Shown one piece after another: positions 23,156 to 48,955 of a DNA stretch of 64,000 nucleotides (position 1 is the stretch's first letter; each line of letters starts with the position of its first letter). Location of the stretch: the NCBI GenBank assembly GCA_037379345.1, contig CM074519.1, positions 6,572,001 to 6,636,000 of the forward strand. The letters are read 5' to 3'. The DNA comes from Perna viridis. Taxonomy: Eukaryota. A model generated the notes under the pieces. It saw nothing but the letters and a program-made list of their open reading frames with translations. It ran no database searches and was not told the DNA's origin. The translations under genes were made by a program, and so were the position numbers.

Positions 23156-23209
23156 TCACTGTTTCTTAACAGCTAAACCGAAAATATCCTCATGAAGTCT
23201 GTCTTCAGC
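23156..23209 (-). CDS. NOS: NOS exon 24 (terminal)
   Basis: ttttacag|[20 protein letters not shown]. Confidence 0.93.
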   Translation of the reverse strand, partial: AEDRLHEDIFGLAVKKQ

Positions 23210-26200
23210 CTGTAAAATAGACAATAAACATGACAGTAATAATAAGAATATTAACTGGTATTTAAAATATAATACAACGAGTCATTTTTTATCTATGTTC
23301 ATTGTTCAAAGAAAGAAAACCATGGATTTGATAAAATAACATGAAATGAAATGCAAGGTTAACATACCGAGTCACACAACCAACAAAAACATAAAATAAC
23401 TGACATAATATGTACAAGGAAACAAAAGTAAATAAACAATCCGGTATGAATATCCCATGTCTAAAGCAAAATAAGGATGACATAAAAAAAAAAACGTAGA
23501 CCTACTTTTAAAATATTATTAAAACTAAAAGGCAACGAACAATGGAACGATGAAAAGATATTAATAGCAGATAAGTACAAAATAAAACAGAGACAAGAAA
23601 TAGACCAGTCAGCCCTATTGCGTAAGATGTGAGTTATAATAAGAATTTCAAAACAGGCGTTGTTCAAGTAATCAGAGACGTCACAGTCGATTAGTCGTAA
23701 CGATGTCATTGGAATTACCGATGTTTTAGTACCATAGTAGTAGCTTGAGGCACTAAGAACAATAAAAAAACAATTAAGCAACAGAAAAAATATCTTCATT
23801 TTGTTGAGGCATGCGTCACCATTGTAGTAGCCTGACGTACTAAGAACAAACGGAAAACAATTAAGTGACAGATAAATTACCTTCATTTTGTTGAGGTATG
23901 CATCACTTTGGTAGTCAGTCATATTGCCATGTCTCTGTATAACAGAGAGTAGTGTATTTTTGACATCTGATGCCATCTGAATATTTCCACAGATGTAGAA
24001 GTGACCGTTGCCGTGCACTATTAGCTGGAAAACTTCTTTTCCGTTCTGTTTGATCAGGTCTTGGACATAGGTCTGTAATTATGAAAAAGATAGTCATAAT
24101 GTGAAGGCGACTTCCAAAAACTATCAGAAATTATCACTTATCAATTGATTTCATCACATTTTTTATCATCATTATTTTCACGTGTTACTGAATAACTTGT
24201 ATATTGCATATATTCAGAGCTAGTGAATGGTTGAAATTATTACGTATTATAAATCACCAAAGAAAGCTTCAGGGGTTAACTACTCCTTGCTATATCAAAC
24301 AGCATACAAAAAGTTGTAGATGTTTATATGCACAGACCTAAAACACTTTACTTCTGGCCCTTCGTGTATTGATCTATCATTTACCCAGAGTTTTTTAATC
24401 TAATATTAAAATAATTAATATCATTGCCCATTTCGTAATCGTTATACATTTAAAAGCTTAACTCATACAAAGACTGTAACATTAATGCGAATATGACTCA
24501 TATTTTTCTTGTTTACAAAGTGAAAAAGTTCAAATAATATGCCTACCTTTCTGGCTCCGGGTTCTCGCGAATATGCAAAGTAACATTTACTCATCACTCC
24601 TTCAAACTCACACTGTGTTATCTCATTTTTATAGAAGTTGTCTGTCGTGGAATTACGGCATCCAAAATACAAAATCATTGGTCCATAGTTGCCTACATAT
24701 AGGGAATGATTTATCTCGTAAACAGTTTAAAAAATGTACAAAGTGACAACCTTCATTTTTAGTGCTTAAATGTTTCAATCAGGATAAAAACGCTTTTTCA
24801 ACACGTTTTATGCTGTCATTGTTTTTTAGCTCAATGATTTATAGATTTAAATAGAACTTTTCACTGCTTTTAGTTATTAGAGTTAATCAAAACATTTTTG
24901 AATACTATACAACTGAATGGGTTGAACTTCCCATTTAATGTGGAATGTCACAATGGAGCATTTGGAATTGGTAAATGGGTAAAGGTGCCTTGGAGTATGG
25001 GGCAGGGTAAAAACATTATTATAGTGTGGCGTCTGTAAAAGGTTTTGATTCCACAACCGTTGTAAAATTTATGATCAACGTCAAAGACATATGAAGGCCG
25101 ACGTCCTTAATAATTTTAACCCAATTTCAAATCAATCTAGTTGTTAACATGATATTTAAATGTATGACGATGGCAAAAATAATGGTTAATAGGATTTTGG
25201 TAATCAGGGTGCGGATGGGGCAATAACGAAACTTGCAATGGTACATGGGACTATGGGGAATAGGACGTGGTTGATGCAATAGATTTGTGGCATGGGGATT
25301 GGAATAAATGAATAACATGCATAGTGTTTATAAACAAAGTTTTGTCGATTTATGTATGAATATTAAGTTGTATATTCAGTGAAAACAGTGACAGATTGTC
25401 TTAATTTTCTTTGTCTTTTTATTATAATTATTCGCATGTTTTCCTAATATTAAATTTGTTAACGGTTATAGGGATTATTACCTTTAGATAATGGCAAAAA
25501 TGAATAGACAATAGAAATAAAGGAAATTCGGGTTTGAAATGGGGATTAGGAAATCAGGAAATGACCTGTTCCTTATCTTGTAAAACAAATTGTATATCAA
25601 CGAAAAAGTCCTACCACGCCTTTTCCTCATATCCACTTTTCTTTGCATCCAGAAGCTTCTGAATGGTGCAATACCGGTTCCTGGTCCAACCATTATAATA
25701 GGAGTTGTCTTGCTGCTTGGCATGTGGAAAAGAGGTGCACTACAATGAGAATAGCACGAGAGTGAGTGGCAGAAATCTATGTTTATATCTAACATCCTAT
25801 TTTAAAGTAGATCAATTTTTTTATAATTTCAATACAGTTTAATCACAGAAATTTAATCAAAATGAGAGTGACAATTCTAAAACAACATGAAAATATTTTG
25901 AATTGGAATATATGTCAGTTTATAGTATCTTGATGATGAATCAATTACATCACAGATACATACAAACGAAACACTTACGTATTCACTACCATACTACAAT
26001 TAAAATATTCTAGTTTACATACGATTTCACAGCACACAGGAGATCTTGTCCTACTCTGACATCATTCAGCCAATTACTACAAAGTCCCCTGTGTGTTTGT
26101 CCATCTAAATACAAAATATACCAATCATAAAAATAATGTAAAGTATATGTATTCTTGTTTTTGTTTTAAGAAATCCTCTTTTTAGAAGAATACGTAACAA

Positions 26201-29200
26201 ATAGTTGGGAAGATTCACACCTTTGCATGGGCATATTGTGATTTGACTAATGTTGGATGAGCACATTTTCATGATTTATATCAAATATGATAACCTTACA
26301 ACGTGCAGGTATCATCATCTCTTACCAAACACTTTTCAAAGATAAGAAAAATGCGGCATCAGATGAGAAATTAAACGATACACCGCTACGTTGTGTTAGC
26401 TAGATTTCATAAAACCCAAAGAGAACAAACTTTCACAATTCCTTAGTATTCACAAAATACCCAGCCACTTTTGTCGAATTTTACGAATTCTTGGGTTTCT
26501 TTTAAAAAGCTTTATTGTCTTGGCATTGTCCTCATTAGCATACAAATATCTTTCCACACCAAACTATGCAATTTGTTATTAAATTTGCTTATATTTTTAG
26601 ATATGACACAAAGATAATAACATGAAAGATATTTCCCAGTTAAATTTGAAAAACTGTGAGCAACCCTATCCCGTATTTAATAACATGCATTTTGTTACCT
26701 CCAAATTAATTTGGATCAAAATCTTAAATTGGCCTTGTGTATTGTAGATTTTGTGAAAATTTCATTAAGTTCCATTCAGTGGTGTTGATGAAGTGACAGA
26801 TAAGACAAGGGATCTCTTCAGTGTAAAAGAAAGTAGGAAATAAGTACAGACGGAAGGATTGATTGATTAATTGTCGGGGTTTAGCAGCAATATTTCAGCT
26901 ATACTCAGGCGATGAACATGAAGTGGATAACAAAATGAACATGAAATGATGACTAAATGAAAAATGGGATGGGACACAAGGATAATGAGGTCGACAAATT
27001 TTGATTGCCACTGGAAATAGGAAGAGATGGGTAGGGTCGGGCAATTTAGCCTCCTGTGACAGAGCCCTATGGTTCCTTCTCCGGGAGAATACAGTAGGAG
27101 TCTTTAACGTGCGAGGAATGTGGCATCTTTCCCAACGCGGTGCACCACTATGGTTTGCGGTCATGTTTTCCGTATTATAGCCTGACAACCTCAGCGTAAC
27201 ACGTCAGGGTTACCCCATTCCACCACCTGGGCACACAACCCAGTTGCTCTGTGGCCAGAGCGCCCTAGCCCCCGGCTAGGGTTCTGAGCACTATTTAGTC
27301 GCCTTTTACGACAAGCTTAGCGCTGCTGCAGGCCTATTTTTGACACCCGGACCTGCACGGGGCCAGACGGAAGGACGGACACCCCGTTTGTTATACATTT
27401 CCTCTCTTGCAAATGTGGGTGCAATTGCTGCATAACGACCAGTACATTTTTGTACACATTTAGCCGTTGATGACGCTATTGTCGTACTTATCGATTAAAA
27501 AACTGATGAAAGTTGTGTTAATTTGATAAATGTCATGTTTTTTTTTTCATGTTAGCTTAAATCATTAAAAAATGATCATAAAACATATTATTTCCTAGGA
27601 GCGAGAGGTCACTCTAATACCTGGTGTTTGATATTTAACCACATCCGCCGTTACATGGATCTCCCCGGACGATGCGTCTAACGAAGAACTTATACTGTAA
27701 TATCTAGGCTGTAAAAGAGGTAGTCTGACAATCAGGTAGTCAGCCGGAAGTCGTATAGAGGGAAACTGTCTCAGTACATCAACCAGAGTTGGCATCTTTG
27801 CAGCTTTCCACTGGTCGTAAGCATTGGTAGTCTAAAAGTATGACGTATTGACATGAAGATTGCAAAAAGATGGGAAAGATTGCATACGAAGATTAAAGTG
27901 GATTTTTTTTCATTAGTACAGTCGTCAAGCTTACATGTAAGTCTGAAATATTTTGCTTTTGCAAATCACGGAATATGAGTCAAATCTAATTGCATTGACA
28001 TCCCTCTACTTGACGCCTACCTGATAGCAATATGACGGTTGCCGCTAATGAAGCAGGACATGCAGACCCTTCAGGCACACTTGAAGCCACTCCTGGTTTT
28101 TGTGGAAGTTCATACTGAATATTTATATTCTAATAATCATTTGTATATATAATTGTACTGTATTTATTTGTCTATATTGTGTAAGTGGATTGGTTCTGTG
28201 TGCTTCCCGCGCGTCATGAACTGTGAATTCTGATGTATCTGATCGACCTTGATGTTTTGGTATAAAACGTATGATGCAGAATACTTTATCATAATTATTG
28301 TTCAAACATTACATCATACAAGTGAAAATACTATCTTTTTCCATCAAAATAGAGTCACTTACTGAAGCCAATTGTCTTAGTCGTTTTTGATCATCTGCAG
28401 TAGATACCATTTCAGACAAATCTTTCAGTAGATCTTGAGACGGTGGCGTTGTGATGTCGATATATGATGTAAGAATATCTCGTAGACTACATTGTGGTAA
28501 TCGGAAATACACTTGCCATGTCTCACTGTTGGCTGTAATTAGTATCAATATAGTTTACATCACAAATGAGGTAAAAAAAACAAAACAGCCGAGGATAGCT
28601 GTAAACCGTAATATATTCGCTATTGGTCTACAGTAAGTCCTGTAACGTTAACATATTAATATTAGCACTTTTCAATATTGACAATCTTCTTTTAAAGCAA
28701 CATAATAGGACGTAAGGAATAATTGCGAGTTTTCAACTAAGCGAAGGTAAATAGCAGAAAAAGCAGGGATGACGGTGGAAAAATAAACCAAAGACAATTC
28801 TATATCAAAAAGACGTTGGAATGAGCTGCTTAACAGGGAATTAGGAGAGAAAAAATATATTGCACCGATGTACATCCGCCGAATATTCTTTGAACAGGAA
28901 AAGCACCAAAACGAAGTCGTGATTGCATACAACGGAAACTATTTTTAAAAAGTAAAAATAGGATAGAAGTCACCAGATGATATATCCTTCCATGAACACT
29001 AGAAAAAGTTAACACAAAGAAATGCATAGCTCTACACAGATACCAAGAAAGCATTGTTGAATGGTCTTTATCAAAGAACATACAAGCCGGCAACGTTATC
29101 GGTCCTCAGTAGCTCATAAAAGTACAATACAATAGAAGTCTCTCCGTCTGATCAGGATTTTAATCTCTAAATTGACCAAATTTATTATAACGCGACAATT

Positions 29201-48823: not shown

Positions 48824-48899
48824 GATATTTATTTCTTCAGGTTGTACCTTTAACTTTTGCAAACATGGTACGTGCAATCTGGCATGTGCGCGCTGAACC

Positions 48900-48955
48900 T
48901 GTAATATATATATATGTATATAAAAAGAGGGGGCGTGGCATGAAAGTCACGTGTG
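48900..48955 (-). promoter_or_regulatory. Putative NOS proximal promoter
   Basis: TATA-like (TA)n tract 48904-48922, GC/KLF box GGGGCGTGGC 48930-48939 and E-box GTCACGTG 48946-48953, in promoter order about 80-130 nt upstream of the ATG. Confidence 0.6.

Follow-up and report, generated by a model that had tools for sequence, protein, structure and literature searches.

A divergent, PDZ-less nitric oxide synthase of Perna viridis with a CX3C zinc motif, a six-residue tail and a shortened autoinhibitory linker

The stretch of the Perna viridis genome analysed here, a 64-kb window (positions 6572001 to 6636000 of contig CM074519.1, hereafter C9, of the 723-Mb assembly GCA_037379345.1), carries on its minus strand a nitric oxide synthase (NOS) gene that we refer to as gene C. 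The gene model was derived with a spliced protein-to-genome aligner written for this analysis, using the Mytilus galloprovincialis nNOS (P0215), a Patella NOS (P0035) and a Haliotis NOS (P0042) as references. Alignment to P0215 yields 24 coding exons running from an ATG at 48823 down to 23159, followed by a TGA stop codon, and the exon boundaries obtained with the Patella and Haliotis references are the same save at a few points. All 23 introns are bounded by GT–AG and the predicted product comprises about 1282 residues. Stop-to-stop translation likewise reveals NOS exons between 48.9 and 23.2 kb of the window.

A Pfam search matched the NO_synthase family (PF02898) to seven exons, with a best score of 94 bits, and Flavodoxin_1 to exons 11, 12 and 14, the match to exon 11 being weak. 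The part of the product that corresponds to the flavin mononucleotide (FMN) domain also matches the structures of the nNOS and iNOS FMN domains. The heme-ligand cysteine and the substrate-binding glutamate (GWYMSTE) align with their counterparts in other NOS, and the pterin/dimer block is intact in alignments with nNOS, iNOS-like and eNOS-like proteins. In the same alignments the FMN (TETGKS and STFGNG), flavin adenine dinucleotide (FAD; RYYSISS) and NADPH motifs are intact, and the three modules follow one another in this order up to the aromatic lid (HEDIFG). An earlier note on this DNA, made from the sequence alone, had described an intact 24-exon open reading frame (ORF) with all catalytic motifs; the open frame, the splice sites and the aligned motifs agree with that description, and gene C is an intact, probably functional NOS gene.

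Gene C belongs to a family of five NOS loci (A–E) in this genome, with A, B and C on contig C9. Besides the window, we examined the regions C9:14020001–14080000, C9:45001–105000, C8:15680001–15730000 and C5:36690001–36740000. Paralogue A (C9:14.03–14.07 Mb) is the orthologue of the PDZ-containing NOS, shares 79% identity with the Mytilus nNOS and has a CX4C zinc motif, a 50-residue insert and a tail of about 70 residues. Paralogue B (C9:56–88 kb) is 83% identical to A, with a CX4C motif, a full insert and a tail of about 45 residues. Paralogues D (C8:15.69–15.71 Mb, zinc motif CGSKC) and E (C5:36.70–36.72 Mb, zinc motif CGAKC) resemble C in having a CX3C motif and no PDZ domain, and end in tails of 21 and 14 residues, respectively. 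Among the five loci a PDZ domain was found only in A, which is the separate PDZ-NOS that the earlier note had proposed to look for in the same genome. No PDZ domain was detected within 17 kb upstream of B, and B looks like a second, independent case of PDZ loss in this genome. For an invertebrate, a NOS family of five loci is unusually large; the oyster is said to have a single NOS (PMC7686737). Among the bivalves sampled, this pteriomorphian genome stands closest to Mytilus.

The sequence of gene C is remote from the others: it shares 53% identity with D and with E and 49–51% with A and B, whereas D and E share 67% with each other. Every NOS retrieved, the PDZ-NOS of its own genome included, lies at about 49–55% identity to C, as expected of the divergent paralogue that the earlier note had proposed. 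Over the full length, no database protein exceeded an identity of about 55%, and the NOS of this genome are apparently unannotated there.

Phylogenetic trees group C with D and E, as C+(D,E), with a support of 100 in the Shimodaira–Hasegawa-like approximate likelihood-ratio test (SH-aLRT) under both the LG+G4 model (63 taxa) and a C20 mixture model (33 taxa). The slowly evolving canonical NOS do not include this clade, the branch leading to C is long (0.5–0.6 substitutions per site), and the clade groups weakly (SH-aLRT 86) with a 1065-residue PDZ-less chiton NOS (Liolophura P0287) and with one transcript-derived NOS. The vertebrate NOS1-, NOS2- and NOS3-like sequences form a clade with 100% support, outside which C, D and E are placed. 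In a tree with molluscan and vertebrate NOS, as the earlier note had proposed to build, C does not stand on its own but forms a clade with D and E. An approximately unbiased (AU) test in IQ-TREE (LG+F+G4, with incomplete tree searches) rejected no topology, and the best-likelihood topology among these incomplete searches placed the C/D/E clade within the canonical bivalve NOS or as their sister group. Judged from these sequences the C/D/E subfamily is real and, no topology having been rejected, may be either old or a fast-evolving bivalve offshoot.

C-type exons also occur in another species. A Logan contig from run SRR26215659 (L035) contains exons 14 and 15 of a C-type gene from another species, with 78% protein identity, a ratio of nonsynonymous to synonymous substitution rates (dN/dS) of 0.08, a synonymous divergence (dS) of about 1.7 and introns that cannot be aligned with those of gene C. 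A second Logan contig, from run SRR26215658 (L037), carries a C-type exon 1, and fragments of D/E-type exons occur in a further run. Because dS is about 1.7, the introns are unalignable and dN/dS is 0.08, this comparison indicates that the C lineage is old enough for its silent sites to be saturated and that it is under purifying selection.

No match to a PDZ domain was found anywhere in the 64-kb window, including 15 kb upstream of the gene, using tblastn with five PDZ-bearing N-termini, and the 233-residue ORF of exon 1 belongs to no Pfam family, in keeping with the absence of PDZ reported earlier. The exon 1 of the other species (P0375, L037:120–776) starts with the same MDY, is 48% identical to that of gene C and has no PDZ domain either. 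Exon 1 (48161–48823) is fast-evolving, yet blocks are conserved between the species, basic ones among them, such as [KR]RH.RTTVG and RFGR.L.YP.GY. These blocks may form a conserved basic targeting or phosphorylation module in place of the PDZ domain. The conservation extends to about 20 nt directly before the ATG, and L037 likewise has an A/T-rich, TATA-like stretch upstream of its ATG. Upstream of the TATA-like run, both species have a TGACT-containing element (48945–48960, CACGTGACTTTCA, versus L037:1–30, GCATGACTCTAA), which, from these two sequences, may represent a promoter element of the E-box or AP-1-like type.

At the other end of the protein, the tail following EDIFG consists of six residues, LAVKKQ, whereas the median of our comparison sample of 181 collected NOS of at least 900 residues is 33. 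The tail is 14 residues long in E, 21 in D and 72 in A. In gene C, the tail and the stop codon share an exon with EDIFG, this last exon has no good internal donor site and an AATAAA hexamer follows about 225 nt downstream of the TGA, so that the six-residue tail claimed previously stands.

The least certain part of the model is a micro-exon in the region of the autoinhibitory insert, between exons 12 and 14, for which four references gave four different candidates. We ranked 424 frame-compatible candidates with a weight matrix for splice sites, for which the five paralogues supplied 104 introns, and a 50-nt exon at 34395–34346, joined to the acceptor at 33483, had the best combined splice-site score. 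The micro-exon of paralogue A is equally long, and the peptide of the 50-nt exon starts with GFSNGL, which resembles AFAKNL and KFGCAL. The 50-nt exon is treated here as a candidate that homology does not fix. This feeds the suspicion that the divergent features of gene C are partly artefacts of the gene model, the real transcripts including a PDZ exon further upstream, a longer exon for the insert or a different 3′ exon. We consider such an artefact quite improbable: the tails of D and E, of 21 and 14 residues, stop within the corresponding exon, the position of the tail and stop within the EDIFG exon, the downstream AATAAA and the lack of a good internal donor speak against another 3′ end, exon 1 has a conserved counterpart with the same start codon in another species, PDZ-like sequence is absent from the 15 kb upstream, and the CX3C motif sits in the middle of a conserved exon.

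The basic, amphipathic calmodulin (CaM)-binding helix of gene C aligns with the 1-5-8-14 site of nNOS. Anchor positions 1 and 14 are kept (Phe and Leu), while Ser and Ala occupy positions 5 and 8. Positions 9 and 13, both Lys in nNOS and eNOS, Leu or Met in iNOS and both Leu in the iNOS-like sequence aligned, are Phe and Ile in gene C; the hydrophobic CaM helix noted previously is borne out in that two lysine positions are replaced by hydrophobic residues, as in iNOS. With the candidate micro-exon, the linker of gene C is about 37 residues long, compared with 50 in A, 54 in nNOS and about 12 in the iNOS-like protein (linker metric: 43 for gene C, a median of 60 and 18 for the iNOS-like reference), and it lacks the conserved core (QYFKMS/SYK[IV]RF-like). 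Given a length of about 37 residues between the canonical 50–54 and the roughly 12 of iNOS, the insert has thus been reduced and stripped of its core but is still present. The short autoinhibitory insert proposed from the sequence is hence correct as to its reduction, to a length that depends on the candidate 50-nt micro-exon, and has to be qualified in that the insert is retained. Similarly, the broader claim that every inhibitory element is reduced holds for the PDZ domain, the tail and the CaM helix, which are reduced or altered, but not fully for the linker. Compared with nNOS-type enzymes, gene C has no PDZ domain, no insert of 45–55 residues with its core and no tail of at least 30 residues; compared with iNOS, in which the FMN-domain insert is absent, it retains one.

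These features bear on the inducible, high-output role put forward in the earlier note, read here as a convergent iNOS-like enzyme that would bind CaM tightly at any Ca2+ concentration and be controlled mainly by immune-induced transcription. The absent PDZ domain, the six-residue tail, the hydrophobic residues at the CaM-helix positions that separate iNOS from nNOS and eNOS and the shortened, coreless insert all point in this direction, and a canonical PDZ-NOS kept elsewhere in the genome would have freed gene C for a new role. We nonetheless regard this scenario as doubtful, since a linker of about 37 residues remains where iNOS has about 12, the Ser and Ala at CaM anchors 5 and 8 make these positions less hydrophobic than their iNOS counterparts and insert-deleted nNOS and eNOS still require CaM (PMC10904358). 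Nor do the κB- and STAT-like motifs, which had been taken as a regulatory hint, carry any weight, as they occur at chance frequency: the window contains five matches to GGGRNNYYCC versus 2.7 expected (18 of 100 shuffles reach five) and 25 matches to the interferon-gamma-activated-site (GAS)-like TTCNNNGAA versus 24.5 expected. No κB-like site was found within 5.9 kb upstream of the ATG. The sole upstream κB-like match, at 54806–54815 and 6 kb from the ATG, is a perfect palindrome, GGGATTTCCC.

The zinc motif of gene C reads CGHRC in the alignment, a CX3C motif as described before, in place of the standard CX4C of the zinc tetrathiolate. In the sample of 181 NOS, CX3C is found only in C, D and E and CX4C in 130 others. 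The paralogues share a second change: the CGD loop of the NADPH site, which has Asp in 151 of the 171 NOS with the motif, reads YICGN in gene C (24000–23980), and the same Asp-to-Asn change is found in D and E as well as in a Hydra NOS and Owenia paralogues. In the related P450 reductase, the Asp loop moves upon NADPH binding. The CX3C and CGN changes could shift dimer stability or hydride transfer in either direction. A CX3C motif confined to C, D and E within the sample, together with a loop that reads CGN, would fit a weakened or non-catalytic NOS that, for example, binds zinc and dimerises poorly and acts as a regulator of other NOS subunits. We give this idea very little credence, because no catalytic motif is disrupted, the exons of the FMN and connecting domains are under purifying selection and CX3C has been kept in three diverged paralogues.

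Another explanation would be that gene C encodes an ordinary, constitutive Ca2+/CaM-dependent NOS with tissue- or stage-specific expression, in which the differences in tail, insert and zinc motif reflect near-neutral drift in a fast-evolving duplicate. The long branch of 0.5–0.6 substitutions per site and the identities of 49–55% are compatible with drift, gene C retains a canonical CaM site and an insert, and arthropod NOS with tails of 5–9 residues exist. Strong purifying selection in the orthologue pair (dN/dS 0.08) runs counter to this explanation, as do the CX3C motif and short tails of three paralogues that are only 53–67% identical; that C, D and E have kept these traits across such distances argues for maintenance rather than drift. 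We therefore rate drift in an ordinary enzyme as unlikely.

We lean towards a different interpretation, in which gene C encodes a CaM-requiring NOS with relaxed autoinhibition, within a fast-evolving PDZ-less CX3C subfamily of three. CaM would still be needed for electron transfer from FMN to heme. The reductase domain would be less restrained than in canonical NOS because the tail has only six residues, the insert is about 15 residues shorter and lacks the SYK[IV]RF-like core and two lysine positions of the CaM helix are hydrophobic. Deletion experiments summarised in a review (PMC10904358) provide the frame for this interpretation: when the insert is removed from nNOS or eNOS, about 7-fold less Ca2+ is required and the reductase is 10–30-fold more active in the absence of CaM, NO synthesis remains CaM-dependent without the insert, and removal of the tail raises reductase activity. 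From this work we infer that the product of gene C requires CaM, has relaxed autoinhibition and probably binds CaM more tightly. Compared with canonical NOS, the enzyme would be expected to reduce more cytochrome c in the absence of CaM, to respond at a lower Ca2+ threshold and to bind CaM more tightly, and full independence of Ca2+ would not be expected. Loss of the PDZ domain would remove synaptic scaffolding, and the conserved basic N-terminal exon probably supplies another localisation or regulatory signal.

Several observations weigh against a CaM-requiring enzyme with relaxed autoinhibition. The shortened insert depends on the candidate micro-exon, and database ORFs from the gene C locus come from unspliced, DNA-type contigs only. 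A search with exon 1 retrieved an unspliced ORF of this locus on a contig with 900 nt of upstream DNA, which therefore provides no RNA evidence, and in a search for spliced transcript ORFs with exon 14 all matches were the size of single exons, had flanks derived from introns and belonged to other paralogues or species. Parts of the locus occur in 14 runs that are putatively of RNA. Crustacean NOS have tails of 5–6 residues, so that shortening of the tail by itself may leave the regulatory class unchanged. The CX3C motif could alter zinc binding or dimer stability and possibly lower activity, and hydride transfer could be slowed by Asn in place of Asp in the CGD loop.

A bolder view extends relaxed control to the biology of the whole clade: C, D and E would constitute a dedicated bivalve NOS subfamily, evolved independently of vertebrates, with a CX3C zinc site, a minimal tail, an iNOS-like CaM helix and weak autoinhibition but no scaffolding domain, and C, its most stripped-down member, would be an immune or stress effector that is CaM-bound at resting Ca2+ and controlled mainly through its expression. 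We put this forward as a tentative possibility, no likelier than convergence on iNOS.

Comparison with known NOS places the CaM-requiring, loosely inhibited enzyme that we favour in context. The canonical molluscan PDZ-NOS (Mytilus P0215, the scallop CfNOS (PMC3724850) and paralogue A) resemble C in the order of domains from oxygenase to NADPH module, in their cofactor motifs and in an exon plan that comprises 24 coding exons, one of them a micro-exon of 50 nt within the region of the insert. In contrast to them, C has no PDZ domain, CX3C for CX4C, a linker of about 37 instead of 50 residues without the core, a tail of 6 instead of about 70 residues and an identity of only 49–55%. Vertebrate NOS2 shares with C the absence of PDZ, a short tail and hydrophobic CaM-helix positions 9 and 13; C is not its orthologue, as it lies outside the vertebrate clade, and differs in its CX3C motif and in an insert of about 37 rather than about 12 residues.

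Other molluscs also have extra NOS copies. PDZ-less paralogues named ‘inducible-like’ in the database accompany the canonical PDZ-NOS in Haliotis (P0042, P0185–P0188) and Gigantopelta (P0234), and these proteins, together with Solemya P0291 (which has a PDZ domain) and Liolophura P0287, have reduced inserts (linker metric 19–44). Inserts shorter than that of C occur among the Solemya, Haliotis and Gigantopelta paralogues. Some tails of the molluscan paralogues measure 18–19 residues and none fewer than 18, versus 6 in C; where the N-terminus is present, these paralogues have CX4C, and they are 44–52% identical to C and form no supported clade with C/D/E. The arthropod NOS of Procambarus clarkii (P0022), Notodromas (P0040) and Centruroides (P0074) are PDZ-less like C and have 5–9 residues after EDIFG. 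They belong to another phylum and clade and have CX4C, and the Procambarus insert is very long. Independent NOS duplications in molluscs have been published (PMC7926364), and what appears to be new is the combination of CX3C, a near-absent tail in a lophotrochozoan, iNOS-like changes of the CaM helix and a conserved basic N-terminal exon. We found no description of such a bivalve NOS subfamily in the open-access literature searched, and one may exist elsewhere.

Table. Coordinates of gene C and its flanking signals in the 64-kb window.
Feature	Position	Strand	Basis and remarks
TATA-like A/T run, candidate core promoter	48903..48922	-	direct reading; putative, ~80–100 nt upstream of ATG
Coding exon 1; ~190-residue basic PDZ-less N-terminus, then start of oxygenase	48161..48823	-	spliced alignment; ATG 48823–48821
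Exon 2; CGHRC zinc motif at 45259–45245	45135..45268	-	spliced alignment
Exon 3; heme-ligand Cys at 44219–44217	44187..44349	-	PF02898, E = 3e-20
Exon 4; oxygenase	43407..43498	-	Pfam, spliced alignment
Exon 5; oxygenase	41372..41516	-	Pfam, spliced alignment
Exon 6; oxygenase	40892..41031	-	Pfam, spliced alignment
Exon 7; substrate-binding GWYMSTE	39049..39223	-	Pfam, spliced alignment
Exon 8; oxygenase	38500..38601	-	Pfam, spliced alignment
Exon 9; pterin/dimer block	37867..38061	-	PF02898, 94 bits
Exon 10; linker and first half of CaM helix (KLTFRIVS from 36943)	36918..37003	-	alignment
Exon 11; second half of CaM helix (AAFFSSILM, 35991–35937) and start of FMN domain (TETGKS)	35847..35991	-	Flavodoxin_1 (weak), spliced alignment
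Exon 12; FMN domain	34773..34877	-	Flavodoxin_1
Exon 13; candidate 50-nt micro-exon of autoinhibitory linker	34346..34395	-	splice-site score; least certain part of model
Exon 14; remainder of linker (33483–33423) and FMN domain	33234..33483	-	Flavodoxin_1, E = 4.5e-15; structure matches; orthologous exon in L035
Exon 15; connecting domain	32556..32700	-	spliced alignment; orthologous exon in L035
Exon 16	31544..31619	-	spliced alignment
Exon 17; FAD-binding domain	31140..31342	-	3′ boundary 31140 or 31136
Exon 18	28363..28532	-	5′ boundary 28532, 28525 or 28511
Exon 19; RYYSISS FAD motif	27621..27831	-	spliced alignment
Exon 20	26023..26104	-	spliced alignment
Exon 21	25615..25739	-	3′ boundary 25615 or 25618
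Exon 22	24547..24692	-	spliced alignment
Exon 23; YICGN loop	23881..24072	-	spliced alignment
Exon 24, coding part; tail LAVKKQ (23176–23159), TGA (23158–23156)	23156..23209	-	spliced alignment
AATAAA, candidate polyadenylation signal	22926..22931	-	direct reading; putative, ~225 nt past stop

Two further features of the window concern repetitive DNA. Intron 1 contains a 101-bp tandem repeat in three copies that are 97% identical (47747–48052). Downstream of the NOS gene, a 140-residue ORF on the plus strand (16476–16898) has a sub-threshold match (E = 0.004) to an L1 transposase RBD-like domain and is probably a retroelement remnant.

The production of NO by bivalve haemocytes is well documented, and the bivalve NOS cloned are nNOS-like PDZ enzymes; molluscan NOS have been called ‘nNOS in structure, iNOS in immunological features’ (PMC9865615; PMC3724850). 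Should gene C turn out to encode an ordinary Ca2+/CaM-dependent NOS, the finding would shrink to a lineage-specific expansion of the gene family. A conserved second NOS subfamily with loosened control, if true, could concretely account for the ‘inducible’ activity as a candidate source and would offer a natural experiment on (i) how much tail and insert a NOS requires, (ii) whether a CX3C loop can still form the zinc-tetrathiolate dimer clamp and (iii) the repeated origin of iNOS-like traits.

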